NCBI GenBank assembly: GCA_002104945.1
Contig: MCFH01000088.1
Coordinates: 63,660 to 127,659 of the forward strand
Length of the DNA: 64,000 nt
DNA from: Piromyces finnis finn
Lineage: Eukaryota > Fungi > Neocallimastigomycota
Direction of reading: 5' to 3'
The notes beneath the pieces were generated by a model. The model worked only from the letters and a program-made list of their open reading frames with translations. It was not told the DNA's origin and made no database searches. This document shows positions 39,355 through 64,000 of this stretch, one piece after another. Positions within the stretch are counted from its first letter, which is position 1. Each line of letters begins with the position of its first letter. The position numbers and the translations under genes were made by a program.

Positions 39355-39362
39355 TAAAATTT

Positions 39363-41022: not shown

Positions 41023-42249
41023 ATGAAGATCAGTGAAATTACTAAAATGCTACCCAGAATTGGTAGTCAAGATAGGGATATCGAAAGCTGGGCTGAAGAA
41101 TTCAGCAGAGTTATGGACCTATCTGACATCAATGATCCCAAAAAGATATTTGCTTAGGCAAAGGAAAGTGTCCAAGGTAGATTAAAAGGAATCATTGATG
41201 ACTTAAAAACAGAAAGTGATACTGGAACAAATTATCCTAGTATCGAAGATATTAAAGAGGCTATTGAAGAATACTTAGAAATCACGCCTCAAGAAAAATG
41301 CTTCAATGTTAAGTCTCTAAAAATTAGAAGAGGAGAAAGTATTAAGGATTTCAACTGGAGATACGGAAACTTATATAAAAATCTTAATGTTGGATCCCAA
41401 CTATTCATTACTGTTAAAGATTATACTAATTCCATCATTTCTCGTCCTTTCATTAGAACTCAAGTAATCACTGCCCAACCTAAAGATATAGAAGCTGCTT
41501 TTAAGGTTGCCGAATTAGCTGAATCAGCAACTGAAGTTCCTCAGTATCATAATGTTAATATGTTTACGGACAGCCAACCTTACTTTGATCCATATCAAAA
41601 CCAAAATTATAATCTATTTACTCAACATAGTGGTGGAACTAACTATAATTATTATAATAATAATGATAGTCCATATACTTATAATGGATATTATAATAAT
41701 AACTATAATAATAATAACTATAATAATAATTATGATAATAATAATTATGATAATAATAATAATTATAATAATTATAATATGCGATTCAATGGAAACTATA
41801 ATATGAGAAATCAACGTTTTAACAAAAGGAATAATTACAGAAATAATTACCCAAATAATTTCAATACTAATAATTATAATAATTATAATAATAATTATAA
41901 TAACTATCAAGGTGATCAAAATGCATATAATAATGGTTATAATAAATACCCTAATAATTCTAATACATTTAGTAACAATAATTATTCCAATATGGAAGAA
42001 AATAAATCATATCAAAATTCTAATAATTATTCTAATAATGCTAATAAAATGAATACTACTACTAATAAAGTTAATCAAACCACACCTCAAAGTCAAGTGA
42101 ATATGTTTAACCAGTCTCAAAGAAATAAATGCTTCAGATGTCAACAAGTAGGCCACAAAATGCAAGATTGCAAATATACGTTCCAAGAACTTGCAGAAAT
42201 GGAAAAACAAGGCCTTATAAACTCTAATCAAAATCATTTAAACTTATGA
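41023..42249 (+). pseudogene. gag: gag (capsid-like region, N/Y-rich region, CCHC zinc knuckle) with one in-frame TAG at codon 45
   Basis: ATG at 41023 reads MKISEITKMLPRIGSQDRDIESWAEEFSRV...KKIFA*AKESV. The frame stays open into ORF 41560..42249, which has CFRCQQVGHKMQDC. Confidence 0.85.
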
Positions 42250-42271
42250 ATGGGAGAAGGAATACTCCCAT
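42237..42271 (+). promoter_or_regulatory. Predicted -1 programmed ribosomal frameshift signal at the gag-pol junction
   Basis: T TTA AAC heptamer in the correct gag phase, a 6-nt spacer, then the hairpin ATGGGAG/CTCCCAT. Pol is in the -1 frame. Confidence 0.75.
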
Positions 42272-45200
42272 AAATCAAACCAATACTACTTTTGCTACAA
42301 TATCAGTACCAGTAAATGAAGAAATTACTATTCCAGTAATAAGAAAAGCTAAAAAGAATACTGATATTAAACCATATAAAAGAACTACCAAAGAAAAATT
42401 AAGTGATAATCCACAACCAATTAGAGTTCCAAGTAATGAGACTAGAGAACCATCAAATAATACTTATGAAGATATAATTGAAGTTCCAAATAATGAAGTA
42501 GAATTGGAGACTGTAATTGAAAATGAAAATAATAATAATAATAATAATCTTAATAATAATTATAATAATAATATTAATAATAATATGAGTATGAATAATG
42601 ACACTAATATAAATAATAATGAAAGTAATAAAATAGATAATAACATTAATGATAATAATATTAATAATAACACTAATTCAACAGAAGCATTAAAACAATT
42701 AGATCCTTCATTCATTAATCAACCCACTATAGATAAAGCTAAACGAAATAATAAAAAAGAACGGGAAAAGGAAATAATAGAATTAGCAAAAGAGATTGAA
42801 CTTCCAAGTCAAAAAGAAAAAGATGTACCAAATGAAAAAGGTACAAAAAGATTAGTTATATCAGCAGATCAAGAAAAATATAATATAACTAAAGATATAG
42901 GAGAAAAATTTGCAAATATAACAATAGGTCAACTACTTGAAATTAGTCCTAAATTAAAAACAGAACTTTCAAAAGCATTAAAATTTACTAAAATTATTGA
43001 GGATGAATCTACAATTCTTTCCACCATAAGAAAAGATAAAGTTGTGAAATCAAAATGCAAAATAGAAGGAATAGAAACTACTGTATATTTGGATTCCTGT
43101 TCATCTATAAATATGATTACTAGAAAGTTCCTATTAGAAAATAATATTCCATTAAAACCAGTTTCAAAAATTAGAGAGACTTTATATCAAGCTTATTCTA
43201 ATACTACTATTGAGTCGCATCTATACGAAATTGAAATTACTATTGGTGATATAACATCTATAGAAATATTTAGACTTATTGAGAAAGAAGATATATTCCA
43301 AGTTTTAATAGGTGTAGAAACTCTAGCCAATATGAAATTAATTATGGACTTTTCTGATCATACTTTATATCAGAAAACTGATGATATTCACAAAATCGGA
43401 TCCTTTGAAAGTATTAATGAAATGAATCCAATTAACTTAATAGAAGAATTTGATGAAGAAGTTAATCAAGGTGCATTAATATACTACTTAACTAGTCAGA
43501 ATGCTAAATATCAAGATTTAGAGATAAAAACTACTAATGATTCTAAACTACAACTTATTAATAAAATAGTAGACGAAGCACAAGAAGAAGCAAAAGACCA
43601 ATTAAAGAATCTTTTAGTAACCAATATAGATGTTTTAGCTAATGATACTGATGATTTGGGTAAATCAAAATTATTAGCTCATGAAATTAAATTAAATCAA
43701 GATGATCCTATTAAACAGAAAATGTATCGTATTTCTAATAAAGAACATATGGAAATTCTAAAAGAAGAAATAGGAAAGCTTTTAAAGAATGATTTAATAG
43801 AACCATCACAATCATCTTGGTCTTCTCCAGTTTTATTAGTACCAAAAAAGAATGGAAAATGGAGGATGTGTGTAGATTATAGAAAATTAAATTCTATAAC
43901 AATAAAAGATTCATATCCACTTCCATACATCGAAGAAATATTATTTTCTATTGGTAATAATGTAAAATATTTATCTACATTAGATTTATTCTCTGGTTTT
44001 CATCAAATACCAATGAAAAAAGAAGATATTGATAAAACATGTTTTACAACAATATTTGGAAATTATAATTACAAAGTAATGCCTTTTGGTTTATGTAATG
44101 CTCCAGCAACCTTTCAAAGAGAAATGAACCGTATATTTCTACCACTTATTGGAAAATGTTTATTTGTTTATATGGATGACCTTTTAGTATTTTCTCCAAG
44201 TCTTGAACAACATATATTAGATCTTCAAAAGGTTTTTAATATAATAAAAGAAAATGGTATAAAAGCAAATCTTTCTAAATGTCATTTCTTAAAACAAGAA
44301 GTAGAGGTCCTTGGTCATATTCTATCAGTAGAAGGTGTCAAACCAGTTGAAAAGAAAATTGAAACTATTAAAAATTGGAAGTCACCAACAAACCTTACAC
44401 AGCTAAGATCATTTTTAGGAGCTATAGGATATTACAGGAAGTTTATAAAAGATTTTGCCCAAATTGCTCATCCATTATTTAAATTATTAAAAAAGGGTAT
44501 GAAATTTGAATGGACATCTGAAACTGAACAAAGTTTCCAAATACTAAAAGAAAGACTGATTAAGTCTCCTATTTTAAAATATCCTGACTATGATAAATAT
44601 TTTATTATAAGAACTGATGCATCACTTAATGGTATTGGTGGTGTATTACTTCAAAAAGATGAAAATAATGTTGAACATCCAATTCATTATGTTAGTAGGT
44701 CTTTAAATGATAGTGAAATTAATTATAGTATAACTGACTTAGAAGGAACCGCAGCTTTTTATTGTTGTAAGAAATTTAAATCTTATATAAGTGGGAATAA
44801 AGAAGAAACGATATTATATACTGACCATAAACCTTTAGTTGGCTTATTTAATAATAAAGAACCAAATAATGCTCGTCAAACACGCTGGGTTACTACACTT
44901 AGTATGCTCAAGGTAAAAGTCAAATATGAACAAGGAAAGAAAAATGTAGTCGCTGATGCATTATCTAGACTAATACCAGACAATAAAAATGATATAAAAA
45001 TTTCACTAGCTACCTTTAATAATAATGATGGTGAAACTACTAAAAATAATATTTTAAATTCAAATAAAGATTTTTACTCTAAAAATAATGAAAATATAGT
45101 TTATTCTTGTAATTTTAATAATTCATGTATTAATGATAATGAAATAAATAAAAATAACAATATTAATCCCTATATTGATAAAAATATTGACTTTAATAAA

Positions 45201-46955
45201 AATTCTTGTGTTAATGAAAGTGTAAATTCAATTAAATATTCTAAACTTAATAATGTTGATTTAAATAATTATATCTCTACTAATAATAATTCACATGGAA
45301 GTAAAAATATAAATATAAATTTTAAAAATGATATTGATAAAAGCAAGAATAATAATTATTTTAAAAATAATGAAATAAATGAATTATCTGAATATGATAA
45401 TGATATTGTTTATAATGAAGTAATGAATAGTGATATAAATGTCTTAAATGATACTCGCAACTTAAATAATAAAATAGATATAAATAAAAATGATTTTCCT
45501 AAATTAAATGAAAATATTACAACTAGTCATAATAATTCTAACATCCATAGTAATCATAATAATATTCATTCATATGATCCATCTAATATTTTTAATATTG
45601 ATAAAAATAATTATTTTAATATAGAAAATAAAATAAAAACATCCTCAGTCCCATCTGAAAATGGAAAAGGTGAATCAATAAATAATTATACTGACTCAGA
45701 AGCGGTACTTGTAACTGACACATCTTTTGATACTAGTGAAAATAATTCAAATGAATATCCAGGAAGTAATAAAATTAAAGAATTTCTTAAAAAGAAAATT
45801 ATCTTAATAAATGGAATAAAATATTATAAAGATGGAGACAATATCAGAAAAGTTGTTGAAGATAAAGAAGAGAAAATAGAATTACTATTAGCTGCGCATT
45901 CAATAGGTCATGAAGGATTTTATAAAACTTATAATAGACTGAAGAAAAGTTATTATTGGAAAAATATGGCTAAAGATGTAGAACTACTTGTGAAAACTTG
46001 TCATGATTGTCAATTAAAGAGACCTCAACCTATTAATAGTGGTACTGAATCATTTGCTACAAAGCCAGGTCTACCATTCACTAGAGTTGGTTTAGATATT
46101 ATTGGACCACTACCAATAACTAAAAATAATAATAAATATATAATAGTACTTGTAGACTATTTTACCAAATGGGTTGAAGCTGAACCTCTAAAATCAATTG
46201 AATCTACGGATGTTATAAAATTTCTTACAAATGTATTTTCTAGACATGGTACTCCAGAAATATTAATTACTGATAATGGTTCACAATTTACTTCTGATGC
46301 TACTAAAGGCTTTCTTGATTTATATGGTATATATGTTCAATATTCTAGCACTTATCATCCAGAAACAAATGGACAAGTAGAAAATCGTAACAGAGAAATT
46401 GTTAAAAATATTCGACTATTAGGAGACTCGAATAAAGAATGGGACGAAGTTCTTCCATCGGCTTTATGGGCTCTACGTACTTGTAAAAATGAAGTAACAA
46501 AATTTTCTAGCTTTGAATTATTATATGGTCGTACTGACCTTCAACCATTTGAACTTATGATAGAATATAATAATAAAAATGAATATGAAACTCCAGAAGA
46601 ATATTTAATAAATAAATTTACTACACATTGTGAATGGATTATTGAAGTTACCAAAAATATTCAGAATGCTAATAAATTATGGGAAAATAGAAGAAAACAA
46701 AAAGCTTCAATGAATACTGCATTTTCAGCCGGTGATTTAGTACTTGTTAGAAATTTTTCAAGAAGAAAGTTAGATCCATTTTTCATGGGACCTTTCCGTA
46801 TTATTAAAATGGAATTTAATACTGCTACATTATGTGACCCTATTAGTGGTGCAATAGCTGAAAGAAATGTTCATCAAAAGAATTTAGTTCATTATCATAC
46901 TTGGCACAATGAGACTTCCAGGGACGAAGTCCAAACTCAAGTGGGGGGATCTTGA
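42246..46955 (+). CDS. pol: pol polyprotein: aspartic protease, reverse transcriptase, RNase H, integrase with GPY/F motif
   Basis: Motifs seen: VYLDSCSSIN, WRMCVDYRKLN, YMDD, IRTDAS, TDHKPL, HSIGH...CHDC, LDIIGP / ITDNGSQF / NGQVE and MGPFRI. The PR-RT-RH-IN order is Ty3/gypsy. No chromodomain is seen. Confidence 0.97.
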   Translation: MNGRRNTPINQTNTTFATISVPVNEEITIPVIRKAKKNTDIKPYKRTTKEKLSDNPQPIRVPSNETREPSNNTYEDIIEVPNNEVELETVIENENNNNNNNLNNNYNNNINNNMSMNNDTNINNNESNKIDNNINDNNINNNTNSTEALKQLDPSFINQPTIDKAKRNNKKEREKEIIELAKEIELPSQKEKDVPNEKGTKRLVISADQEKYNITKDIGEKFANITIGQLLEISPKLKTELSKALKFTKIIEDESTILSTIRKDKVVKSKCKIEGIETTVYLDSCSSINMITRKFLLENNIPLKPVSKIRETLYQAYSNTTIESHLYEIEITIGDITSIEIFRLIEKEDIFQVLIGVETLANMKLIMDFSDHTLYQKTDDIHKIGSFESINEMNPINLIEEFDEEVNQGALIYYLTSQNAKYQDLEIKTTNDSKLQLINKIVDEAQEEAKDQLKNLLVTNIDVLANDTDDLGKSKLLAHEIKLNQDDPIKQKMYRISNKEHMEILKEEIGKLLKNDLIEPSQSSWSSPVLLVPKKNGKWRMCVDYRKLNSITIKDSYPLPYIEEILFSIGNNVKYLSTLDLFSGFHQIPMKKEDIDKTCFTTIFGNYNYKVMPFGLCNAPATFQREMNRIFLPLIGKCLFVYMDDLLVFSPSLEQHILDLQKVFNIIKENGIKANLSKCHFLKQEVEVLGHILSVEGVKPVEKKIETIKNWKSPTNLTQLRSFLGAIGYYRKFIKDFAQIAHPLFKLLKKGMKFEWTSETEQSFQILKERLIKSPILKYPDYDKYFIIRTDASLNGIGGVLLQKDENNVEHPIHYVSRSLNDSEINYSITDLEGTAAFYCCKKFKSYISGNKEETILYTDHKPLVGLFNNKEPNNARQTRWVTTLSMLKVKVKYEQGKKNVVADALSRLIPDNKNDIKISLATFNNNDGETTKNNILNSNKDFYSKNNENIVYSCNFNNSCINDNEINKNNNINPYIDKNIDFNKNSCVNESVNSIKYSKLNNVDLNNYISTNNNSHGSKNININFKNDIDKSKNNNYFKNNEINELSEYDNDIVYNEVMNSDINVLNDTRNLNNKIDINKNDFPKLNENITTSHNNSNIHSNHNNIHSYDPSNIFNIDKNNYFNIENKIKTSSVPSENGKGESINNYTDSEAVLVTDTSFDTSENNSNEYPGSNKIKEFLKKKIILINGIKYYKDGDNIRKVVEDKEEKIELLLAAHSIGHEGFYKTYNRLKKSYYWKNMAKDVELLVKTCHDCQLKRPQPINSGTESFATKPGLPFTRVGLDIIGPLPITKNNNKYIIVLVDYFTKWVEAEPLKSIESTDVIKFLTNVFSRHGTPEILITDNGSQFTSDATKGFLDLYGIYVQYSSTYHPETNGQVENRNREIVKNIRLLGDSNKEWDEVLPSALWALRTCKNEVTKFSSFELLYGRTDLQPFELMIEYNNKNEYETPEEYLINKFTTHCEWIIEVTKNIQNANKLWENRRKQKASMNTAFSAGDLVLVRNFSRRKLDPFFMGPFRIIKMEFNTATLCDPISGAIAERNVHQKNLVHYHTWHNETSRDEVQTQVGGS
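46939..46952 (+). promoter_or_regulatory. Polypurine tract
   Basis: AAGTGGGGGGAT-CT lies directly before the 3' LTR. Confidence 0.85.
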
Positions 46956-48108
46956 TACGCTACTCACATAAAAACATGATAAAAACTAGCTGAATAAACA
47001 CGACTTAACCCATAGTAACTTATAATAAAAATAAACAATAATAACCCTTAAAGATGAATGAATAATAATTTTATGAAAATATAACCCTTTCTTTAAATAA
47101 AAAATATTATCTTTATTATATAATAAATTCTGAGTAAAAACGACCTAATAGTGATAATAATAAAATAAATTATTAAATAAAATAAATTATTAAATAAAAT
47201 AAATTATTAAATAAAATAAAACGACTTAATCCAATAATGTACTAAAATAATAAAATAATAATAAATAAATAAAAATGAATAAATAAACTAAAAATAAAAT
47301 GATATACATCAAATTATTAATTCTAGTGTTTATCCAAGTGTTCTTTAGAAATTCTCTTAAACTTATAAATTAAAAAAAATAACTAATTGAGTAATTATTA
47401 CTAAAATGATAAACTTAAAACCTGGAAATAGAACAATAATAACAATTCCAAAGATAAAATACAGAACTCTTTTATGTTTCTGTATAAAATGAGTGTTTAT
47501 AATAATTGATACTTTTAATATTTTAATTTTGTTAAATTTTTATTTTAATTTTATTTTAATTTTATTTTAATATTATTTTAATTTTAAATTTTAATTATTT
47601 TATTCAAGGTATTATACATTTAATGATAGTCAATGATAATTTATAATAATTTTTCTAAATTTAAACATTTTGAAGTAATAAGAAAATCAAATAAGTAATA
47701 TTCTATAATATTTTATAATACTAAGACATAATTTTAATTTATTCTTTTAATTTTAATAAATAATAACAATAGTTATAATAGCATTTAATAGTTAAAAATA
47801 ATAATACCTGTAATAAATGAAAATGTATAAAAGGAAGATAAAATTCTTCTTTATAAAGGGCGGACAATAAATAGAGAATAAAAAGACTATAAATAGACTA
47901 TAAATAGACAATAAATAAATTATAAATATAATAAAGAGATAATTTAAACATAATAAAAAGAGTTTATTTTCGAGTTTTTGAGTGATTTATTTGTTAATTA
48001 TAAAACATATTTTATTTTATTTTAAATTTATTGTTTCATCATAAATATTAGAATTTATTATTTATTAAAAATATTATATTATTCAAAAATATATCGGTCA
48101 ACGCATCA
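46953..48108 (+). repeat. 3' LTR (1156 bp)
   Basis: Near-identical to the 5' LTR except for a 17-bp unit loss, an 11-bp duplication and a cluster of changes near its end. Confidence 0.95.
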
Positions 48109-48112
48109 TAAT

Positions 48113-49046: not shown

Positions 49047-50453
49047 AACTGGATTTAAAACAAATTCAGATAATATCTATAATTAATTAAACATAATAAT
49101 TAGAATTAAATGATCCCAATAATTATTTTAAAACACCTTTAAAAGTCACCATTTAAATTTTGGTTCAGTGAAAGGGTTATGATTTCAAAAAATTTAATAT
49201 CAATACACTATAACCCTTAGCCAAAAATAAACAAACACGAAACTAGGCATAACTCGCCAAAAACGAGTGTTACGGCTGTGAAACCAAGTTTATTAGAAAG
49301 CTTAAGGGAAAGGATACATTTTGGTACAATCGTAGTCCTTCTAACTGATCATTTAAAGATTTTAATAAGTAAATTAAAATCAATATAACATCAAGTATGG
49401 ATCATAAACACTTCTTATGACTTAATAAAAATTAAAAATATAGCAATAAGCATTTTAGTTATATTAAATTAATGAAAATGACTATTATTAAAAATAGAAT
49501 TAAACCGTTTAGGTTAACAGTTACTAGACATAAATGAAATAATTTTAATTATTAAAAATTAGATTAACGACAAGCTTTAAAAATTAATTTTTAAAATAAT
49601 GATTATCTAGTTATAACAAATATACAAATATGTTATTATTAATTATAATTAAATGTTAAATGATTAGTCATATGTTTATTTTATTGTATGTCATGACAAA
49701 CAAACAAACAACACCTTTATAATTTATTATATCATATTATTAATATATTACATGTAATATATTATCTTTGTCTGAAAGTTTTAAGTATTATAAATGTTAT
49801 GTTATAATTAAATTTAATTTCTTAAAAAACATTTTTACTATATAATTAATAACATTCTGACCTAGCCGCATAACCAAACCTAAAAAAACTTAACAACATA
49901 TAAAAATAACCCTTTAAAATAAATGAATAATAATTCTATAAAAATATAACCCTTTTTAAATAAATAATATTCTTTTTATTAAATAATAATAAATTCTGAA
50001 TAAATGACTTAATTAATAAAAAATAAGTATAAAGTAAATTATTAAATAAAACGATTTAATCATATAATGTATTAAAATAATAGAATAATAAATAAAAATG
50101 AATGAATAAACTCAAATAAATGGTGTACATCAAATTAGTGTTTTATCCAAGTGTTCTTTAGAAATTCCTTTAAAATTATATTTATAAACTAACAATAAAA
50201 TAATTGAGTAATTATTACTAAAAGTGACAAACTTAAAATCTGGAAATAGATCAATAATAACAATTTTAAAGATAAAATACAGAACTCTTTTATGTTAAAC
50301 ATAATTAAAAGAGTTTATTTTTGAGTTTAAGAGATTTGTTTGTTAATTATAAAACGTATTTTATTTTAAATTTATTGTTTCATCTAAATCTTAGAATTTA
50401 TTATTTATTAAAAATATTATATTATTCAAAAATATATATCGGTCATCCCATCA
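48877..50453 (+). mobile_element. Older, probably composite LTR block
   Basis: Its first ~50 bp resemble the start of 48113-48872. About 49900-50453 is a diverged copy of the intact element's LTR, ending ATCGGTCATCCCATCA. TAAC and a further TGATA start follow at 50454-50462. Confidence 0.6.
48936..49058 (+). mobile_element. Short 5'-truncated poly(A) retroposed insertion with a 15-bp TSD
   Basis: ATTAACTGGATTTAA occurs at 48936-48950 and 49044-49058, flanking 46 nt of unique sequence plus about 47 A. Confidence 0.85.
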
Positions 50454-50824
50454 TAACTGATATATAATATAACTATATGGCTAAAAATATTAAATTTATG
50501 TAATTAAAATTAAGGGTTAGCAATTATTTAAGAAAAATAGTAGTAATTAAATAACCAATAATATATCATATAAAAGTAATTAAAATTTACTTTTATTAAA
50601 AGAGAGAATTCTTTTTATAAAATATAGTTGATTATTGAGAATTTTTATTGTAGTTTTAACTTAAAATATTTTTTTATGTTAAATATATAAATACATTTAA
50701 AATTATTTTTATCAATAAAAATAAAAGAGAGAAACTTATAAATAAAAATTTTATGTTTAATTCTTTTTTTTATATTCAAATATTTGATGTATAATTTGTT
50801 AAACACAGTAAAACTAATAAAACA

Positions 50825-52527
50825 AAATAGAAATAATATACTTTCCAGAGAAGTTTTTAAATGAGGCTTGACACGAATTGTGAAAACCTAAATATAAATC
50901 TCTCATTCCAGGAACTGATTCATCAGCTTTCTTGAAAAAGTACCTATAGTTTCGCAAAGTAACAAGGCAAGGATACTCTGTATTCGATCCAGAACCATTA
51001 CCAGTTTCTTGGAAACATAAAAATAATGGTTTGAAAATAGCTGTGAAATAGCTAATACTATCTCTCTTTTCGTGATTCCACCCATTGGTGTTCCAACTAA
51101 GACAAAAAGAAAAGTTATCAGGCTTGTTGGATGAGGAAGAATCGTTGCTATTATTATTATTATTAAAGTCATCGTTATTAATGGATGATGCATCAGAGGA
51201 ATAAGTAGAACTATTACTAGATGGCTGTGAAACTGAAGAACTATCAACTATTGAACTGTTATCAGAATTGATAGAGCTATTAGAATTAATTGTTGAATGT
51301 TGAGATTGAAATTGTGTTTGCTGTAGATCTGGAATATTTTCATGATTGGAAACTTGTTGAAGATCTTGTTGAAGATCTTGTTGAAGATCGGATTGTTAAT
51401 GAGATTGTTGAACTGATTGTTGAAATGATTGTTGAATAGAATGTTGATGTTTATTAGAAACTAAAATTTTACGTTTGAGAGTGGAAAAAGTGTATTTGTG
51501 ATTCCTTCTACTACGAGCTGAAAAGGAAATTGAGGTAACTGAAAGTTTCTTCTTTAACATGTGTAAGATTTTAATACAATCTTTTGATGAACCATGAACC
51601 TTGACTAAGAAAAAGTGATCATTGAAAGTTTGAAAATATTTAACACTAATAACTGAATTAAATTTATCTTCTAGAATAACCTCGAGTTTTTCCCATAGCA
51701 TATTTACTGACCATGATCGAATACCACAGATAAAGAAGGAGCGAATATCATCTAAGGGGATACCATAAGACCGGGTACCATGTCTGATATAATTCTTATC
51801 TTTAATATAAAGGACTGACATGATAATAAATTCTAATTAAAAAATATTGAATATAAAATAAATACTAATAAAAATTACAAATATAACGTATATGGAAAAA
51901 AATCTGTCTCTCTCTCTCTTCTTAAAAGTGCTGGATAGTACAAAAATTGTTACGATGCTTTGTTTAAAGTTTCTTTTTTTTGAATTCTAGTTGTAAATTT
52001 TCTTTAAAAATTCTAGTTTTGGTTTGTTGTTAGTAAATTCGATTCGCTTTTTGACACTAAAATTGTTTGACTTTACTTTTCATTAAATATTTAAATTGGT
52101 AAAAAATTTGAATCAAGAATGTCGACACCAGAAAGCTTGTGAATAGTATTTTTACATGATGTAGAGTGAATCAGTCTCTTACAAGAAACAATACAACAAT
52201 AGCTACATGAATATAAAAATACAATGCAAATGCTAAAGTTGACTACATTGGATTCTTACAAGAGAAGAGTAGTACTACATGAATACATGAATAAAAGAAA
52301 AAATACAGCAACAAAATGTATTACTCTTCTAATTAAATACTATACAAACTTACCTGAATGTCAAACATTCAACTTATTCATCAAATACTTAATTCGATGA
52401 ATAAAATGTTTTTTAATCGCTCAGTACCATGAGCTTAGTCCTAATAATTTTCCCTTAAAGACTAACCAAGCATCCATTGCGCAATGCTTGGATTTAATTC
52501 TTTCTACTCTCTCAGTACCATGAGCAT

Positions 52528-52530
<3 letters not shown>
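50825..52530 (-). mobile_element. Non-LTR retrotransposon copy 1: 5' portion only, decayed; its extreme 5' end appears displaced to 63936-~63997
   Basis: Near-identical to the 5' part of copies 2 and 3. It has a premature TAA (CAA>TAA near 51396) and lacks the RT and 3' end. Confidence 0.9.
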
Positions 52531-52572
<42 letters not shown>

Positions 52573-52809
52573 GGCATCAAATATTTTAAACTTTATTATT
52601 AATTTAATTAAAATTATAATACATGTAATAAAAAATTAAAAAATAAAAATAAAAATAAAAAAAATATGTTTAAATAAACACAAATGAATAAAATTTGGGT
52701 ATAATGTATTCTAGTAATTTTAATTAAAGTAAGAAAGCCACTATCATACTAAAGTATAATAATTGTATTTGACTTCCAATGGGACACCGAGCCAAAGATC
52801 AAAATTTTG

Positions 52810-55800
52810 TCATGGAACAAAATTATGATCTCCATTGGTTGCGCTGGCCCTCCTGGCCTGTCTTACTGTTTCTTCAGCATTGACGCTCTTGGATGTTGCT
52901 TCAAACCTTTTGAACATTGACCATTGCTGGCCAATAGCAAAAGGCATGATTTTGGTTAGAAGTTCCGCGGTTACCGTCAAGAATGGTGTTCCTTCGTTAG
53001 TATCAGGTTGAATCTGACGCTTACAAAGTTCTTTCCATTCCCTTGAATTGTAATTAATATTGTTAAAACTTCTTCCCCCAAGAAGGAATTTAAATATTTT
53101 ACTGCACACACTAGAATAATCATACACATTAATATTCACCGGATTATTAGAACTATTACTATCATTAACTAAATTACTATCTAAATTAGAATTATTATCT
53201 TCACTATTGCTATCATTACTAATATTATTATTTCTATTATTGTTATTATTACTATTGTTACTATTACTATTGTTACTATTACTATTGTTATTACTACTAT
53301 TGTTACTATTACTATTAATGTTATTACTATCTCTACTGATATTATCCATTTCATTATTATTGATAGGACTATTGGAATTACGTTGACTGAAAAAATTTAA
53401 TAGCTGGACTATGGAATCATAATGTTTAATACGGATATCTCTAAATGTTGGACAATCTAATAACCAATGTTTAATACTTTGATCTCCACACTTGCAACAT
53501 GGACAGTAGTTAGGACAAACTGGGTCAACAAATTTGGCAGCTTTGGCAACTCTAGCATCCAACTTGTATCCGCTTCTTGCTTTCAATAGCCAGTAGAAGC
53601 CATAGGCAAACTCTGGGTACTCATAACATAATTTAATAAAATCTTTAGTTCCAATAAATTTATTATCATCATAATATTGCGCTTTGATTGAATTCCCTTT
53701 GAGATCTTTCCAATAAAAGTTTTTAACTGCTTTAACATCTCCATGTTTCTTTAGTTTTTTATCAAGTGTCCTACTTGATTTGCACCACGTGTATTTTCTA
53801 AATTTAGGAATGTAATTGACAAGGTGTGAGATAATACAATTTGAGTTTTTCCATTTGTTAAAACATCTAACCTGAGCTAACGCACATTTGGCTGACAATG
53901 GAGGAATATTCAAATCTTTTGAAATAGAGTATAAAGATATAAACGATACAGCTTTATGAACTCCGGCAACCCATCGTATTCCTTTGTTAACATGCTTCTG
54001 AGCAATCCTAGACCTAGCTTTGTTGGATCCAAGTAATGGTGCAAAGTATGAAACTCTGCTAATCACTTGTGAGTTAAGTACTAGTTTTTTGAAAGGAATA
54101 GGAATATTAGGATTTCTTAAGAATTTACTGATTGAGAAAAGCCCTTTCAAAACCTTGTTATTAAGAGCTTTAATTACTGGTTTAAGGGACAGATTCTTAT
54201 CAAATGGAACACCAAGATAAGTATAGCAATCAGTAGTTGGAATGGGTTGTCCTGCTAAGTAAAATGTTGGATCTCTCTTGTTCTGATTTTCTATTGATTC
54301 AGGACGAATCACCATCGTTGAACATTTCTGGATACCAAATTCCATTTCATTATACAAGGCCCATTCATTAACTCTTCTAAGCATCTTTTTTAAGCATCCT
54401 CTTGTTGGAGCACAAATAACTATATCATCTGCAAAAAGTCCACCACAGCATCGAGTGTCACCTAAACTGACTCCTAGATCTTCGCACTCTCTAAATATAT
54501 CATTAATAAAGAGATTAAAGAGAATAGGAGAAAGAGGGCAACCTTGACGGACTCCTTTCTTCACATCAAAAGATTTCGAGAATTGTCCATCTAATTTGAC
54601 ATTAGCCTTAGATGTTAAATATAAATTTTTGATAAATTGTAGACTCTTACCTCGGATTCCTAAACAATCTAATTTATGGAGAATATTACCGATTGGGACT
54701 GAATCGTATGCTTTCCTGAGATCTAAAAAGGCCAAATATGTCTCTTTATTATCTAATTGACGTCTACGGCATATTTCTTGGATTGAAATGAAAAGACTAA
54801 TACTTTCTTCCTTTTTTCGAAAACCAAATTGTTCAGGTCTAATGAAATTATTCTTTAAACCATATTCTGAGATTCTAGTGGTGACAATTTTGGAAATCAA
54901 CTTAATACCATTATTGATAAGTGATATACCTCGATAGTTATCACAATCTGTCAAATCTCCCTTCTTAGGAATAGAAACAATACTGGATTCATTCCATGAG
55001 TTGGGGAAATCTCCATCCCAAATACGGTTGAATAATTTAAGAATAAAATTTAAACCATGAGCATCATTATCTGAAGTAGTATTACCAGAAGAATTATTAT
55101 CTGTAGCATTATTAGAATCATTACTTGATGGAACTAATGCTTTGTAAAATTCAATTGGAATACCATCCGGACCTGATGCTTTATAATTTGGAGTAGTGAG
55201 GATAGCTGACTTGACTTCATCAATACTAATATCTTGGTTGATATCCCACTCATCAAGCATAGGAAGTGAAAAACGTTTATTCGTTGGTTCTTCATACCAA
55301 TGCTCCAAATCAAGACTTACACCACTTGGGTCTGATGCAAGATTTTCGAAATGATCATGCCACACATCTAGTTGTTCTTCCGTAGCAACAACTAATTCTC
55401 CATTTTTATTTTTAATTGGTTGAGCAATAAAGAAAGAATCTTTTCCAATTTTTGCAGTTTTCTTGATCCATTTCCAGGCCTTCTTAGGATTATGACTCTT
55501 CATATACTCACATCCTGTTTTAATCCAATGAAGATATTCTTGCTTCCTAAATTCATTACATCTTTTGTGGATGTAATCAATGAGTTTACGGTAGATTTTA
55601 ATTCTTTTAATAAATTCATCTATATCATAAATTCTTTCTTTTTTAAATCTCTTATACAACTTCATTTTGATTTTTTGAAGATTAAAAATTTGTTGTGAAA
55701 TATGAAATGAAGACTTTATAACATTATTTGCTGAAGTAATACTGAGCTCGTCTGCAATTGAAAAAGCAGTTGAAGTAAACTCTTTGGAAAGTTCATCTGT

Positions 55801-57333
55801 AGAAACATTAGGATCGTTGGATTTTGCTGAAAGTATTTGGAATTTATTATGACTGATAATAGATTCCTTTTCCTCAATACATTTTAATCTATTCCATTTC
55901 AGAATTTTCTTAGGAACATTAAAGTCATTAGAAAAATCTTCCATAGGAATAATTTTACCATTAATAAGAAGTGGCTTATGGTCTGATACAGGATAAAAAT
56001 TATTTATAAATGATCCTGAGTGAATAAGATCTTTCATCTTCGAATTGATAAGAGCATGGTCAATGTCGGAAGATTGATCACCTCGAGTCCAAGAGATAGT
56101 CGACCCTCTAAGCGGAAGAATTTCCCAATCTCCTAATCCATTAGTTGATAACCAGTTGGATAATTTTACTTTAGACATATTAAAATCACCAACAAGAATC
56201 GATGGATGGGATGAATGAGTTTGTAACCACAAGCGAACTTCTAACTTTGCATGATCAACATAGATGTTGTGATGACTATGAGGCATATAAACATTACCAA
56301 TCGAGCATTTGAATCTATTCCAGAGACTAAAAGTATAAATAGAAATAATATACTTTCCAGAGAAGTTTTCAAGTGAGGCTTGACATGAATTGTGAAAACC
56401 TAAATATAAACCTCTCATTCCCGGAACTGATTCGTCAGCTTTCTTGAAAAAGTGTCTATAGTTTCGCAAAGTAACGCGACAAGGATAATCTGTATTCGAA
56501 CCAGAACCATTACCAGTTTCTTGGAAACATAAAAATAATGGTTTGAAAATAGCTGTGAAATAGCTAATACTATCTCTCTTTTCATGATTCCACCCATTGG
56601 TGTTCCAACTAAGACAAAAAGAAAAGTTATCAGGCTTGTTGGATGAGGAAGAATCGTTGCTATTATTATTATTATTAAAGTCATCGTTATTAATGGATGA
56701 TGCATCAGAGGAATAAGTAGAACTATTACTAGATGGCTGTGAAACTGAAGAACTATCAACTATTGAACTGTTATCAGAGTTGATAGAGCTATTAGAATTA
56801 ATTGTTGAATGTTGAAATTGAAATTGTGTTTGCTGTAGATCTGGAATATTTTCATGATTGGAAACTTGTTGAAGATCTTGTTGAAGATCTAGTTGAAGAT
56901 CGGATTGTTGATGAGATTGTTGAACTGATTGTTGAAATGATTGTTGAATAGAATGTTGATGTTTATTAGAAACTAAAATTTTACGTTTGAGAGTGGAAAA
57001 AGTGTATTTGTGATTCCTTCTACTACGAGCTGAAAAGGAAATTGAGGTAATTGAAAGTTTCTTCTTTAACATGTGTAAGATTTTAATACAATCTTTCGAT
57101 GAACCATGAACCTTGACTAAGAAAAAGTGATCATTGAAAGTTTGAAAATATTTAACACTAATAACTGAATTAAATTTGTCTTCTAGAATAACCTCGAGCT
57201 TTTCCCATAGCATATTTACTGACCATGATCGAATACCACGGATAAAGAAGGAGCGAATATCATCTAAGAGGATACCATAAGACCGGGTACCACGTCTGAT
57301 ATAATTCTTGTCTTTAATATAAAGGACTGACAT
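52810..57333 (-). CDS. LINE ORF: N-terminal domain, APE endonuclease, reverse transcriptase, CCHC finger
   Basis: APE motifs SWNTNG, FQET, VGDFN, DIDH and VSDHKPL. RT motifs FLDLRKAYDSV, GVRQGCPLSPILF, LFADD and YTYLG. Zinc finger CPCCKCGDQSIKHWLLDC. Confidence 0.97.
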   Translation of the reverse strand: MSVLYIKDKNYIRRGTRSYGILLDDIRSFFIRGIRSWSVNMLWEKLEVILEDKFNSVISVKYFQTFNDHFFLVKVHGSSKDCIKILHMLKKKLSITSISFSARSRRNHKYTFSTLKRKILVSNKHQHSIQQSFQQSVQQSHQQSDLQLDLQQDLQQVSNHENIPDLQQTQFQFQHSTINSNSSINSDNSSIVDSSSVSQPSSNSSTYSSDASSINNDDFNNNNNSNDSSSSNKPDNFSFCLSWNTNGWNHEKRDSISYFTAIFKPLFLCFQETGNGSGSNTDYPCRVTLRNYRHFFKKADESVPGMRGLYLGFHNSCQASLENFSGKYIISIYTFSLWNRFKCSIGNVYMPHSHHNIYVDHAKLEVRLWLQTHSSHPSILVGDFNMSKVKLSNWLSTNGLGDWEILPLRGSTISWTRGDQSSDIDHALINSKMKDLIHSGSFINNFYPVSDHKPLLINGKIIPMEDFSNDFNVPKKILKWNRLKCIEEKESIISHNKFQILSAKSNDPNVSTDELSKEFTSTAFSIADELSITSANNVIKSSFHISQQIFNLQKIKMKLYKRFKKERIYDIDEFIKRIKIYRKLIDYIHKRCNEFRKQEYLHWIKTGCEYMKSHNPKKAWKWIKKTAKIGKDSFFIAQPIKNKNGELVVATEEQLDVWHDHFENLASDPSGVSLDLEHWYEEPTNKRFSLPMLDEWDINQDISIDEVKSAILTTPNYKASGPDGIPIEFYKALVPSSNDSNNATDNNSSGNTTSDNDAHGLNFILKLFNRIWDGDFPNSWNESSIVSIPKKGDLTDCDNYRGISLINNGIKLISKIVTTRISEYGLKNNFIRPEQFGFRKKEESISLFISIQEICRRRQLDNKETYLAFLDLRKAYDSVPIGNILHKLDCLGIRGKSLQFIKNLYLTSKANVKLDGQFSKSFDVKKGVRQGCPLSPILFNLFINDIFRECEDLGVSLGDTRCCGGLFADDIVICAPTRGCLKKMLRRVNEWALYNEMEFGIQKCSTMVIRPESIENQNKRDPTFYLAGQPIPTTDCYTYLGVPFDKNLSLKPVIKALNNKVLKGLFSISKFLRNPNIPIPFKKLVLNSQVISRVSYFAPLLGSNKARSRIAQKHVNKGIRWVAGVHKAVSFISLYSISKDLNIPPLSAKCALAQVRCFNKWKNSNCIISHLVNYIPKFRKYTWCKSSRTLDKKLKKHGDVKAVKNFYWKDLKGNSIKAQYYDDNKFIGTKDFIKLCYEYPEFAYGFYWLLKARSGYKLDARVAKAAKFVDPVCPNYCPCCKCGDQSIKHWLLDCPTFRDIRIKHYDSIVQLLNFFSQRNSNSPINNNEMDNISRDSNNINSNSNNSSNNNSNSNNSNSNNSNNNNNRNNNISNDSNSEDNNSNLDSNLVNDSNSSNNPVNINVYDYSSVCSKIFKFLLGGRSFNNINYNSREWKELCKRQIQPDTNEGTPFLTVTAELLTKIMPFAIGQQWSMFKRFEATSKSVNAEETVRQARRASATNGDHNFVP

Positions 57334-57929
57334 GATAATAAATTCTAATTAAAAATATTGAATATAAAATAAATACTAATAAAAATTATAAATATAACGT
57401 ATATGGAAAAAAATCTGTCTCTCTCTCTCTTCTTAAAAGTACTGGATAGTACAAAAATTGTTACGATGCTTTGTTTAAAGTTTCTTTTTTTTGAATTCTA
57501 GTTGTAAATTTTCTTTAAAAATTCTAGTTTTGGTTTGTTGTTAGTAAATTCGAATCGCTTTTTGACACTAAACTTGTTTGACTTTACTTTTCATTAAATA
57601 TTTAAATTGGTAAAAAATTTGAATCAAGAATGTCGACACCAGAAAGCTTGTGAATAGTATTTTTACATGATGTAGAGTGAATCAGTCTCTTACAAGAAAC
57701 AATACAACAATAGCTACATGAATATAAAAGTACAATGCAAATGCTAAAGTTGACTACATTGGATTCTTACAAGAGAAGAGTAGTACTACATGAATACATG
57801 AATAAAAGAAAAAATACAGCAACAAAATGTATTACTCTTCTAATTAAATACTATACAAACTTACCTGAATATCAAACATTCAACTTATTCATCAAATACT
57901 TAATTCGATGAATAAAATGTTTTTTAATC

Positions 57930-58223
57930 GCTCAGTACCATGAGCTTAGTCCTAATAATTTTCCCTTAAAGACTAACCAAGCATCCATTGCGCAATGCTT
58001 GGATTTAATTCTTTCTACTCTCTCAGTACCATGAGCATGAGTAGACCCCCTTGATAAACTCCATTATTAAATAAATGAAGGCACGTTCCTAAGAGGGCAC
58101 CAAGCATCCATTACGCAATACTTGGATTTAATTCTTTCTACTCTCTCAGTACCATGAGCATGAGTAGACCCCCTTGAGAAACTACATTTATTAAATAAAT
58201 GAAGGCACGTTCCCAAGAGGAAA
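57930..58223 (-). repeat. Structured 123-bp tandem repeats forming the 5' end of LINE copy 2
   Basis: GCATGAGTAGACCCC occurs at 58035 and 58158 (period 123). Multiple inverted repeats are present. Confidence 0.9.
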
Positions 58224-58227
58224 GCAT

Positions 58228-58230
<3 letters not shown>

Positions 58231-58282
<52 letters not shown>

Positions 58283-61200
58283 GGCATCAAATATTTTAAA
58301 CTTTATTATTAATTTAATTAAAATTATAATACATGTAATATAAAAATTAAAATAAAATAAAAATAAAAAAAATATGTTTAAATAAACACAAATGAATAAA
58401 AATTGGGTATAATGTATTCTAGTAATTTTAATTAAAGTAAGAAAGCCACTATCATACTAAAGTATAATAATTGTATTTGACTTCCAATGGGACACCGAGC
58501 CAAAGATCAAAATTTTATCATGGGACAAAATTATGATCTCCATTGGTTGCGCTGGCCCTCCTGGCCTGTCTTACTGTTTCTTCAGCATTGACGCTCTTGG
58601 ATGTTGCTTCAAACCTTTTGAACATTGACCATTGCTGGCCAATAGCAAAAGGCATGATTTTGGTTAGAAGTTCCGCGGTTACCGTCAAGAATGGTGTTCC
58701 TTCATTAGTACCAGATTGAATCTGACGCTTACAAAGTTCTTTCCATTCCCTTGAATTGTAATTGATATTGTTAAAACTTCTTCCCCCAAGAAGGAATTTA
58801 AATATTTTACTGCACACACTAGAATAATCATACACATTAATATTCACCGGATTATTAGAACTATTACTATCATTAACTAAATTACTATCTAAATTAGAAT
58901 TATTATCTTCACTATTGCTATCATTACTAATATTATTATTTCTATTACTACTATTGTTATTATTACTATTGTTACTATTACTATTGTTATTATTACTATT
59001 GTTACTATTACTATTAATATTATTACTATCTCTACTGATATTATCAATTTCATTATTATTGATAGGACTATTGGAATTACGTTGACTGAAAAAATTTAAT
59101 AGCTGGACTATGGAATCATAATGTTTAATACGGATATCTCTAAATGTTGGACAATCTAATAACCAATGTTTAATACTTTGATCTCCACACTTGCAACATG
59201 GACAGTAGTTAGGACAAACTGGATCAACAAATTTGGCAGCTTTGGCAACTCTAGCATCCAACTTGTATCCGCTTCTTGCTTTCAATAGCCAGTAGAAGCC
59301 ATAGGCAAACTCTGGGTACTCATAACATAATTTAATAAAATCTTTAGTATCAATAAACTTATTATCATCATAATATTGCGCTTTGATTGAATTCCCTTTG
59401 AGATCTTTCCAATAAAAGTTTTTAACTGCTTTAACATCTCCATGTTTCTTTAGTTTTTTATCAAGTGTCCTACTTGATTTGCACCACGTGTATTTTCTAA
59501 ATTTAGGAATGTAATTGACAAGGTGTGAGATAATACAATTTGAGTTTTTCCATTTGTTAAAACATCTAACCTGAGCTAATGCACATTTGGCTGACAATGG
59601 AGGAATATTCAAATCTTTTGAGATAGAGTATAAAGATATAAACGATACAGCTTTATGAACTCCGGCAACCCATCGTATTCCTTTGTTAACATGCTTCTGT
59701 GCAATTCTAGACCTGGCTTTGTTGGATCCAAGTAATGGTGCAAAGTATGAAACTCTGCTAATCACTTGTGAGTTAAGTACTAGCTTTTTGAAGGGAATAG
59801 GAATATTAGGATTTCTTAAGAATTTACTGACTGAAAAAAGCCCTTTCAAAACCTTGTTATTAAGAGCTTTAATAACTGGTTTAAGGGACAGATTCTTATC
59901 AAATGGAACACCAAGATAAGTATAACAATCAGTAGTTGGAATGGGTTGTCCTGCTAAGTAAAATGTTGGATCTCTCTTGTTCTGATTTTCTATTGATTCA
60001 GGACGAATCACCATCGTTGAACACTTCTGGATACCAAATTCCATTTCATTATACAAGGCCCATTCATTAACTCTTCTAAGCATCTTTTTTAAGCATCCTC
60101 TTGTTGGAGCACAAATAACTATATCATCTGCAAAAAGTCCACCACAGCATCGAGTGTCACCTAAACTGACTCCGAGATCTTCACACTCTTTAAATATATC
60201 ATTAATAAAGAGATTAAAGAGAATAGGAGAAAGAGGGCATCCTTGACGGACTCCTTTCTTCACATCAAAAGATTTCGAGAATTGTCCATCTAATTTGACA
60301 TTAGCCTTAGATGTTAAATATAAATTTTTGATGAATTGTAAACTCTTACCTCGGATTCCTAAACAATCTAATTTATGGAGAATATTACCGATTGGGACTG
60401 AATCGTATGCTTTCCTGAGATCTAAAAAGGCCAAATATGTCTCTTTATTATCTAATTGACGTCTACGGCATATTTCTTGGATTGAAATGAAAAGACTGAT
60501 ACTTTCTTCCTTTTTTCGAAAACCAAATTGTTCAGGTCTAATGAAATTATTCTTTAGACCATATTCTGAGATTCTAGTGGTGACAATTTTGGAAATCAAC
60601 TTAATACCATTATTGATAAGTGATATACCTCGATAGTTATCACAATCTGTCAAATCTCCCTTCTTAGGAATAGAAACAATACTGGATTCATTCCATGAGT
60701 TGGGGAAGTCTCCATCCCAAATACGGTTGTATAATTTAAGAATAAAATTTAAACCATAAGCATCATTATCTGAAGTGGTATTACCGGAAGAATTATTATC
60801 TGTAGCATTATTAGAATCATTACTTGATGGAATTAATGCTTTGTAAAATTCAATTGGAATACCATCCGGACCTGATGCTTTATAATTCGGAGTAGAGAGG
60901 ATAGCTGACTTGACTTCATCAATACTAATATCTTGGTTGATATCCCATTCATCAAGCATAGGGAGTGAAAAACGTTTATTCGTTGGTTCTTCATACCAAT
61001 GCTCCAAATCAAGACTTACGCCACTTGGATCTGATGCAAGATTTTCGAAATGATCATGCCACACATCTAGTTGTTCTTCCGTAGCAACAACTAATTCTCC
61101 ATTTTTATTTTTAATTGGTTGAGCAATAAAGAAAGAATCTTTTCCAATTTTTGCAGTTTTCTTGATCCATTTCCAGGCCTTCTTAGGATTATGACTCTTC

Positions 61201-63928
61201 ATATACTCACATCCTGTTTTAATCCAATGAAGATATTCTTGTTCCTAAATTCATTACATCTTTTGTGGATGTAATCAATGAGCTTACGGTAGATTTTAAT
61301 TCTTTTAATAAATTCATCTATATCATAAATTCTTTCTTTTTTAAATCTCTTATACAACTTCATTTTGATTTTTTGGAGATTAAAAATTTGTTGTGAAATA
61401 TGAAATGAAGACTTTATAACATTATTTGCTGAGGTAATACTGAGCTCGTCTGCAATTGAAAAAGCAGTTGAAGTAAATTCTTTGGAAAGATCATCTGTAG
61501 AAACATTAGGATCGTTGAATTTTGCTGAAAGTATTTGGAATTTATTATGACTGAGAATAGATTCCTTTTCCTCAATACATTTTAATCTATTCCATTTCAG
61601 AATTTTCTTAGGAACGTTAAAGTCATTAGAAAAATCTTCCATAGGAATAATTTTACCATTAATAAGAAGTGGCTTATGGTCTGATACAGGATAAAAATTA
61701 TTTATAAATGATCCTGAGTGAATAAGATCTTTCATCTTCGAATTGATAAGAGCATGGTCAATGTCGGAAGATTGTTCACCTCGAGTCCAAGAGATAGTAG
61801 ACCCTCTAAGCGGAAGAATTTCCCAATCTCCTAATCCATTAGTTGATAACCAGTTGGATAATTTTACTTTAGACATATTAAAATCACCAACAAGAATCGA
61901 TGGATGGGATGAATGAGTTTGTAACCACAAGCGAACTTCTAACTTTGCATGATCAACATAGATGTTGTGATGACTATGAGGCATATAAACATTTCCAATC
62001 GAGCATTTGAATCTATTCCAGAGACTAAAAGTATAAATAGAAATAATATACTTTCCAGAGAAGTTTTCAAGTGAGGCTTGACACGAATTGTGAAAACCTA
62101 AATATAAACCTCTCATTCCCGGAACTGATTCGTCAGCTTTCTTGAAAAAGTGTCTATAGTTTCGCAAAGTAACACGACAAGGATAATCTGTATTCGAACC
62201 AGAACCATTACCAGTTTCTTGGAAACATAAGAATAATGGTTTGAAAATAGCTGTGAAATAGCTAATACTATCTCTCTTTTCATGATTCCACCCATTGGTG
62301 TTCCAACTAAGACAAAAAGAAAAGTTATCAGGCTTGTTGGATGAGGAAGAATCGTTGCTATTATTATTATTATTAAAGTCATCGTTATTAATGGATGATG
62401 CATCAGAGGAATAAGTAGAACTATTACTAGATGGCTGTGAAACTGAAGAACTATCAACTATTGAACTGTTATCAGAGTTGATAGAACTATTAGAATTAAT
62501 TGTTGAATGTTGAGATTGAAATTGTGTTTGCTGTAGATCTGGAATATTTTCATGATGGGAAACTTGTTGAAGATCCTGTTGAAGATCTTGTTGAAGATCG
62601 GATTGTTGATGAGATTGTTGAACTGATTGTTGAAATGATTGTTGAATAGAATGTTGATGTTTATTAGAAACTAAAATTTTACGTTTGAGAGTGGAAAAAG
62701 TGTATTTGTGATTCCTTCTACTACGAGCTGAAAAGGAAATTGAGGTAACTGAAAGTTTCTTCTTTAACATGTGTAAGATTTTAATACAATCTTTTGATGA
62801 ACCATGAACCTTGACTAAGAAAAAGTGATCATTGAAAGTTTGAAAATATTTAACACTAATAACTGAATTAAATTTATCTTCTAGAATAACCTCGAGTTTT
62901 TCCCATAGCATATTTACTGACCATGATCGAATACCACGGATAAAGAAGGAGCGAATATCATCTAAGGGGATACCATAAGACCGGGTACCACGTCTGATAT
63001 AATTCTTATCTTTAATATAAAGGACTGACATGATAATAAATTCTAATTAAAAAATATTGAATATAAAATAAATACTAATAAAAATTACAAATATAACGTA
63101 TATGGAAAAAAATCTGTCTCTCTCTCTCTTCTTAAAAGTACTGGATAGTACAAAAATTGTTACGATGCTTTGTTTAAAGTTTCTTATTTTTTGAATTCTA
63201 GTTGTAAATTTTCTTTAAAAATTCTAGTTTTGGTTTGTTGTTAGTAAATTCGATTCGCTTTTTGACACTAAACTTGTTTGACTTTACTTTTCATTAAATA
63301 TTTAAATTGGTAAAAAATTTGAATCAAGAATGTCGACACCAGAAAGCTTGTGAATAGTATTTTTACATGATGTAGAGTGAATCAGTCTCTTACAAGAAAC
63401 AATACAACAATAGCTACATGAATATAAAAAGTACAATGCAAATGCTAAAGTTGACTACATTGGATTCTTACAAGAGAAGAGTAGTACTACATGAATACAT
63501 GAATAAAGAAAAAATACAGCAACAAAATGTATTACTCTTCTAATTAAATACTATACAAACTTACCTGAAAAAATCAAACATTCACTTATTCATCAAATAC
63601 TTAAATTTGATGAATAAAATGTTTTTAATCGCTCAGTAACCATGAGCTTAGTCCTAATAATTTTCCCTTGAAGACTAACCAAGCAATCCATTGCGCAATG
63701 CTTGGATTTAATTCTTTCTACTCTCTCAGTACCATGAGCATGAGTAGACCCCCTTGAGAAATTACATTTATTAAATAAATGAAGGCACATTCCTAAGAGG
63801 GCACCAAGCATCCATTGCGCAATACTTGGATTTAATTCTTTCTACTCTCTCAGTACCATGAGCATGAGTAGACCCCCTTGAGAAACTACATTTATTAAAT
63901 AAATGAAGGCACGTTCCCAAGAGGGTAG
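58231..63928 (-). mobile_element. Non-LTR retrotransposon copy 3, full length (~5.7 kb), A49 tail
   Basis: Poly(T) at 58231-58279. GCATGAG flanks it at 58224-58230 and 63929-63935. Confidence 0.95.
58518..63031 (-). pseudogene. LINE ORF of copy 3, split by a 1-bp deletion near 61241
   Basis: Copy 2 has TCTTGCTTCCT where copy 3 has TCTTGTTCCT. The two ORF-track fragments (610 aa and 894 aa) join to the same protein as copy 2. Confidence 0.85.
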
Positions 63929-64000
63929 GCATGAGTAGACCCCCTTGAGAAACTACCATTTATTAAATAAATGAAGGCACGTTCCCAAGAGGGAAAGAGG
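63631..64000 (-). repeat. Structured 124-bp repeats at the 5' end of LINE copy 3, plus the displaced remainder of the original target unit
   Basis: GCATGAGTAGACCCC occurs at 63738, 63862 and 63929. Confidence 0.9.

Follow-up and report, generated by a model that had tools for sequence, protein, structure and literature searches.

Two full-length LINE copies nested at one exact nucleotide of a third copy's 5' repeat in Piromyces finnis

Layout of the array and its joints

At one end of a 64,000-nucleotide stretch of Piromyces finnis DNA (contig MCFH01000088.1, positions 63,660 to 127,659; the whole stretch is called the window here, and position 1 is its first letter), three copies of a long interspersed nuclear element (LINE), a retrotransposon of about 5.7 kb without long terminal repeats (LTRs), lie on the minus strand from 50825 to the window's end. 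Our analysis centred on window positions 50825-64000, where two insertion events could be scored, both at a single locus. It is well supported that two full-length copies are nested at one exact nucleotide within the 5' repeat of the third. When copy 2 was compared with the window by BLAST, copy 1 was recovered at 50825-52531 (98.07% identity to positions 3807-5512 of copy 2) and copy 3 at 58241-63935 (98.02% identity over 5.7 kb). The features are listed below, with target site duplication abbreviated as TSD, untranslated region as UTR and open reading frame as ORF.

50825-52523, minus strand: proximal part of copy 1, the 5'-most 1.7 kb of the element, from BLAST to copy 2
52524-52530, minus strand: TSD, first of three copies, GCATGAG on the plus strand (CTCATGC in element sense)
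52531-52569, minus strand: poly(A) tail of copy 2, T39 on the plus strand
52570-52809, minus strand: 3' UTR of copy 2, 240 nt
52810-57333, minus strand: ORF of copy 2, intact, 1507 aa
57334-58220, minus strand: 5' UTR of copy 2, about 890 nt
58221-58223, minus strand: extra bases at the 5' joint of copy 2, AAA on the plus strand
58224-58230, minus strand: TSD, second of three copies, GCATGAG
58231-58279, minus strand: poly(A) tail of copy 3, T49 on the plus strand
58280-63925, minus strand: body of copy 3, with 3' UTR, split ORF and 5' UTR
63926-63928, minus strand: extra bases at the 5' joint of copy 3, TAG on the plus strand
63929-63935, minus strand: TSD, third of three copies, which with the next bases again makes an intact site
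63936-63993, minus strand: distal part of copy 1, a 58-nt 5' terminus ending in the conserved start motif (sense CCCTCTTGGGAACGTGCC)
63994-64000, no strand assigned: 7 bases past the 5' end of copy 1, AAAGAGG on the plus strand, with no match to GCATGAG

Read in the element sense, the array runs from the 58-nt head of copy 1 to CTCATGC, then through CTA into copy 3 with its A49 tail and a second CTCATGC, and then through TTT into copy 2 with its A39 tail, a third CTCATGC and the remainder of copy 1. This remainder, the proximal part, holds the degenerate beginning of the ORF, the inner portion of the 5' UTR and the greater part of the copy's single full monomer, and its remaining ORFs are only 141 and 114 aa long. 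The ORF of copy 3 has one frame break, which leaves two pieces (58518-61202 and 61199-63031). Outside repeats, the GC content of the window is 12-25%.

The 7-mer GCATGAG is found seven times in the window where 1.36 occurrences are expected, a count that 0 of 100 shuffles reached, and all seven copies fall within LINE copies. Four of them, starting at 58035, 58158, 63738 and 63862, lie in uninterrupted monomers, where they are always preceded by CTCTCAGTACCATGA, are followed by TAGACCCCCTTGA and read GCATGAG/TAGACCCCC (joint GCATGAG/TAGACC). Directly after the copies at 52524-52530 and 58224-58230, T39 and T49 start instead. The seventh, at 63929-63935, has the 5' end of copy 3 plus TAG before it and TAGACCCCC... 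after it, up to CCCAAGAGGG at 63993, and this following sequence is the 58-nt 5' terminus that the proximal part of copy 1 lacks. All five monomer sites of the window are identical over about 35 nt. An empty site was reconstructed in silico by removing copies 2 and 3 plus two GCATGAG copies, so that 52400-52530 was joined to 63936-63993; the product is colinear with the 5' UTR of copy 2 (185/189 identical) and with that of copy 3 (183/190). Since three copies of the 7-mer accompany two inserts, the array points to two insertions, each with an identical 7-bp TSD.

Several of these points had been made in an original prediction from the letters of the stretch, namely that the poly-T runs at 52531 and 58231 start right after GCATGAG, that this motif stands at 52524-52530, 58224-58230 and 63929-63935, that the interrupted unit resumes after the third copy and that each insertion regenerates a usable site; all of them hold. 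So does its view that the target has no T-run: the primer end is ...GCATGAG at both joints, in place of the T-rich nick site of the L1 clade, and without such a run annealing to poly(A) of the L1 type would not be available to the element. Two small sequencing runs of what is likely the source sample yielded contigs with a 31-mer that spans the joint between monomer and poly-T; this match supports the one joint only and is not independent of assembly, but it speaks against a joint made purely by assembly.

The two insertions are independent events, because their tails and 5' joints differ and the divergence of the copies is star-like. The tails are T39 and T49, the extra bases at the 5' joints are AAA and TAG, and the 5' ends read CCAAGAGG and CCAAGAGGG, so that even the first templated base differs. 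Over the 1.7 kb shared by all three copies, pairwise identities of 98.1, 98.5 and 98.8% make them roughly equidistant, and 19, 14 and 17 private differences describe a star-like divergence of 1-2%. The order of the insertions cannot be told from the array, as copy 2 entering first and copy 3 then entering its upstream TSD would give the same array as copy 3 entering first and copy 2 then entering its downstream TSD. The two hits at GCATGAG/TAGACC with the same 7-bp TSD stand as originally proposed, but the proposed order, with copy 2 first, is only one of two that fit. Whichever came second found the 7 bp and only one original flank, so that site recognition should need no more than that.

Other observations concern the margins of the array. 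Copy 1 breaks off inside its ORF, at 50825, where an anonymous AT-rich stretch of about 400 bp (50422-50825) adjoins it, and its missing 3.8 kb is absent from the rest of the window; such a 3' truncation is not producible by target-primed reverse transcription (TPRT), so that a deletion or rearrangement must also have hit the locus. At the other margin, the 7 bases at 63994-64000 (sense CCTCTTT) resemble a short stutter of the element's own first bases, and the start of the array falls outside the window, past 64000. Within 63862-63993, Tandem Repeats Finder (TRF) detected a 68-bp tandem unit made by the self-insertion itself, which consists of the 58-nt head, the 7-bp TSD and the 3 extra bases.

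The element, its 5' monomers and its relatives

The ORF of copy 2 contains an apurinic/apyrimidinic endonuclease (APE) domain (about 55894-56646), which is N-terminal to a reverse transcriptase (RT) domain (about 54205-54972), then a CCHC zinc knuckle (about 53440-53514, a weak zf-RVT match) and an Asn/Ser-rich tail; its N-terminal region (about 229-240 aa) matched no Pfam family. The RT domain matches Pfam RVT_1 with E=1.4e-35, and its closest solved relative is human L1 ORF2p (E=5e-33, vs E=3e-18 for R2), so that both this RT and the APE domain set the element apart from the R2 superfamily. The endonuclease matches Exo_endo_phos with 31.5 bits (Pfam cut-off 24.5), its catalytic residues (N, E, Y, D, N, D, D and H) do not vary among 34 aligned homologues, and its model (predicted local distance difference test, pLDDT, 88.7) has the L1 endonuclease as top PDB match (E=1e-11). 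The identification of an APE and RT element from the letters was thereby borne out. As to fold, proteins of L1, Tx1, RTE-derived and R1 type are about equally good matches, which does not separate the clades.

Poly(A) tails, a 7-bp TSD, the absence of LTRs and the combination of RT and APE are those of an APE-type LINE; unlike L1-clade elements with a separate upstream ORF1, this one has a single ORF of 1507 aa. On its sequence and structure model, we take it to be a LINE of young age and high copy number, with a single ORF that encodes an APE endonuclease and an RT; its closest solved relatives are those of L1. The family is very abundant: 11,923 contigs of the source sample were placed on the element, as pieces of 100-250 bp, with joints passed over as repeats. 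When their depth is added up, it stays roughly even along the element (258-700 thousand between its 3' and 5' ends); this crude measure suggests mostly full-length copies, which are typical of site-specific LINEs. At many positions of copy 2 (52400-58300; for example 53003, 53007 and 53524) the base is one that almost no other genomic contig has, which puts copy 2 about 1% off the family consensus although its ORF is intact; transitions dominate these differences.

In copies 2 and 3, a degenerate inner unit comes after a tandem pair of monomers of about 123 nt each; in copy 1 there was a single monomer. The 5' UTR of copy 2 is made of an inner unique part, the degenerate inner unit and monomers at 57976-58097 and 58098-58220, with one intact GCATGAG/TAGACC site each (58035-58041 and 58158-58164); the two monomers of copy 3, for which TRF reported a 124-nt period, have intact sites at 63738-63744 and 63862-63868. 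In the element sense, full copies start with CC(C)TCTTGGGAACGTGCC, and each monomer begins with this 5'-terminal motif. A similar start motif heads the relatives L003, L004, L009 and L011, which argues that it marks the true 5' terminus of the element. As single-stranded DNA, the monomer folds into three hairpins (z=-3.6), and hairpin 2, palindromic (TCTACTC...GAGTAGA), holds the target CTCATGCTCATGG. In the window, the target was seen only inside the element's own monomers, and not in a host multicopy gene or repeat.

Some further properties of the monomer were noted. In each monomer, as in that at 58098-58220, hairpin 3 is a stem of CCAAGCAT...ATGCTTGG that pairs almost perfectly. The target motif is itself a 6-bp tandem duplication (CTCATG twice plus G), and the degenerate inner unit has a single CTCATGG. 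A local resemblance had raised the suspicion that the monomer mimics a host RNA, 5S rRNA; this was rejected, since Rfam matches at E≤10 were only spurious microRNA or long non-coding RNA matches, with no rRNA, snRNA or tRNA among them and none at E≤1 (best E=1.8). ARAGORN found no tRNA in the monomer, and a B-box-like motif of RNA polymerase III (Pol III), checked by eye, was not convincing. Two distant relatives (L012:1-193 and L005:85-200, 56-58% identity) have tandem 5' units starting with a CCCCGATGAAGAGG-type motif, which suggests that monomeric 5' UTRs are a trait of this LINE group.

The closest protein relatives come from rumen and gut metagenomes, Orpinomyces and Neocallimastix, the best being 69% identical, which fits an anaerobic gut fungus (Neocallimastigomycota) as host, and a database search found no record of the exact element protein. 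Two scans of JGI (Joint Genome Institute) metagenomes, with the 3' end and with the monomer site, returned nothing or unrelated bacterial matches only, and a scan of viral contigs for the element was empty. Among the relatives L001-L005, L009, L011 and L012, none has a poly(A) tail adjoining its own 5' UTR; in L011, a run of poly(A) stands 62 nt upstream of the 5' end, with a spacer that matches nothing. In the gut metagenome sequence L003 (5180-5479), the poly(A) is followed by an inverted 3' UTR fragment and then by an RT fragment in sense orientation that belongs to the same family (88% identical). Either a LINE has nested in a LINE at other positions, or the assembly is chimeric.

A self-directed target and rival explanations

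We consider it probable, although by no means assured, that a target preference directed at the element itself best explains why both copies are nested at the same site. The positions of the nicks, the source of the specificity and the behaviour across the genome are what we infer beyond the nesting. During TPRT, the priming strand would be nicked after ...CCATGAGCATGAG and before TAGACC, and the other strand 7 bp away, so that the new copy would become flanked by a 7-bp duplication, CTCATGC in the element sense. The duplication together with one unchanged flank would re-create a usable site, which would allow the same spot to be hit twice, and every new full-length copy would add two more sites, giving a head-to-tail nested array. 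The specificity would reside in the endonuclease. It may be reinforced by RNA: copies already in the site are followed by CTCATGCTCATGG..., which is complementary to the nicked target if read through, so that read-through transcripts with the 3' extension CUCAUGCUCAUGG... could pair with it. Such pairing resembles what is described for R1Bm, where it sharpens insertion. As to where the specificity lies, pairing between RNA and target, or tethering at a fixed distance from the transcription start, would fit equally well as a sequence-specific endonuclease.

Several findings weigh against a self-directed target. Only two events at a single locus can be scored, even if 2/2 use the site, and copies 2 and 3 still contain four equally intact internal sites without an insertion. 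The 7 bases past copy 1's own 5' end differ from the motif, so that copy 1 itself may sit elsewhere. The relatives, at 45-69% protein identity and in other species, sit at unrelated places: the DNA flanking the poly(A) of L001 and L003 bears no relation to their 5' UTRs, L009 lies immediately 3' of an actin gene, and L004 and L011 differ in their 5' flanks. The endonuclease fold is of no help as a clade marker, given that L1, Tx1, RTE and R1 types are not told apart by it.

One rival is tethering, in which the complex would be recruited by a binder of the element's own promoter monomer and would cut 58-65 nt downstream of the transcription start. Such behaviour has parallels in Dictyostelium TRE5-A, whose insertions lie about 48 bp away from tRNA genes, and in Ty3, which inserts at Pol III start sites; here, both events lie 58/65 nt from the 5' terminus of copy 1, in its outermost monomer, and a Ty3/gypsy-type LTR element in the same window starts about 14 bp upstream of a tRNA-Ser, so that position-specific integration may be common in this genome. 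However, cleavage defined by sequence would more typically reuse both nicks exactly and leave the same 7-bp TSD, the cut was identical although the first insertion had changed one flank, and no host factor or binding motif was identified, so that we regard tethering as unlikely. The same constant 7-bp offset of the second-strand cut is left unexplained if the endonuclease is non-specific and RNA homology is the guide, with read-through or chimeric transcripts that carry a monomer after the poly(A) priming at pre-existing nicks or breaks, for example at a hairpin or cruciform. The downstream flank of any copy in the site would indeed be perfectly complementary to the primer strand, and the site lies within an inverted repeat that could extrude and be nick-prone, but the first copy must then have entered by another route; we find this guidance by RNA alone very unlikely.

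The remaining alternative is a secondary array, grown from one insertion through unequal crossing-over, gene conversion or an RT template jump, or a repeat that the assembly expanded. It would accommodate the slightly closer mutual identity of copies 2 and 3 (98.8%) than of either to copy 1, and the source-sample data are short contigs in which joints were skipped as repeats. Yet the 5' joints differ in sequence and length, which rules out unequal crossing-over as the origin of the second copy; crossing-over would moreover have set an internal monomer beside the poly-T, and not a complete 5' end with extra bases. Template jumping between RNAs was likewise ruled out, since it would not leave an identical set of 7 target bases beside every joint. 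Unequal tail lengths, differences between the copies at about 2% of positions all along the element, and the occurrence of the joint 31-mer in contigs of two source-sample runs make a secondary array highly improbable and the least probable of these alternatives.

The tRNA gene and the LTR element mentioned above lie apart from the LINE array. The tRNA-Ser(TGA) gene is on the minus strand at 38096-38177. The Ty3/gypsy-type retrotransposon that begins about 14 bp upstream of it has LTRs at 38191-39357 and 46952-48111 (97.1% identical), and gag-like and RT-RNaseH-integrase ORFs at 41560-46955 on the plus strand; a diverged LTR fragment stands at 49891-50421. Integration anchored at tRNA genes thus seems to operate in this genome.

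Returning to the self-directed target, a broader form of it can be put forward only tentatively, as possible rather than probable: an APE-type, L1-like LINE with nucleotide-exact specificity for the hairpin of its own promoter monomer, a landing pad that renews itself, arrays across the genome, and a split 5' piece that gives rise to new tandem units. If the specificity were genome-wide, the element would be a clean natural case of an APE LINE whose only target is itself. It would have a safe haven without depending on a host multicopy gene, and its landing pad would grow with copy number, which would explain arrays. Transcription from the split 58-nt head into copy 3 would give progeny with an extra short 5' unit, and LINE promoter monomers, as well as satellites derived from transposable elements (TEs), might have originated by such read-through of the split piece (the 68-bp unit). 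The element could throw light on the way in which arrays of 5' monomers, and tandem repeats derived from TEs, come into being. For the engineering of site-specific retroelement insertion, a compact APE/RT protein whose target is short (about 20-30 bp) and known would also be of interest. The locus, in the same window as a tRNA-anchored LTR insertion, would add to the almost undescribed mobile-element biology of the Neocallimastigomycota; a literature search for LINEs of this phylum found no paper.

Comparison with known systems

The original prediction had seen no precedent for this behaviour in fungi, which was overstated. Cnl1 of Cryptococcus neoformans/deneoformans is described as self-inserting, with tandem nested arrays; a 2026 study groups it with MoTeR in the R2 superfamily and calls its precise specificity undefined (PMC12810828). 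The present element resembles Cnl1 in that it also inserts into its own copies in tandem orientation. Cnl1, however, is subtelomeric, has telomere-repeat-like TSDs and many 5'-truncated copies, and its self-target is undefined, whereas the present element is of APE type with an L1-like RT, occurs as full-length copies, and uses a defined nucleotide in a promoter-like 5' monomer, with no telomere context visible. Elements of the R2 superfamily and MoTeR have restriction-like endonucleases rather than APE ones.

Nested clusters of own copies are also formed by Zepp and ZeppL, L1-clade LINEs of Coccomyxa, Chlorella and Chlamydomonas, for which two sources report no single-nucleotide target in their own 5' UTR, the original 1997 description not being covered (PMC3446292; bioRxiv 10.1101/2022.06.16.496473). 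The likeness is that of an L1-type LINE piling up as nested copies of itself; Zepp differs in that each chromosome has a single cluster, which lies at a putative centromere or a chromosome terminus. Mouse L1 shares the architecture of the 5' end, with a 5' UTR of tandem promoter monomers and full-length copies that start at a monomer boundary. Unlike the present element, mouse L1 has two ORFs, prefers to nick at TTTT/AA and is not known to target its own monomers.

The site-specific LINEs R1, TRAS/SART and the Tx1 group (among them Tx1L, Keno and Mutsu) have APE endonucleases, defined targets without a T-run, mostly full-length copies and reuse of the same site. Their targets are 28S ribosomal DNA, telomere repeats, snRNA or 5S genes, microsatellites or, for Tx1D, another transposon. 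In R1 and other Drosophila elements, double insertion at one site gives rise to tandem dimers (bioRxiv 10.1101/158386). The present element has in common with this group its APE, a target without a T-run, the reuse of one site and the double insertion, but these LINEs target host repeats or another transposon, whereas its own target was seen only inside the element itself. What stands of the claim of novelty is narrower: in the literature searched, no LINE of APE type was found whose defined target lies in its own 5' monomer. Altogether, the element shares its behaviour with Cnl1 but not its enzyme class, and its enzyme class with R1 and Tx1 but not their host targets.

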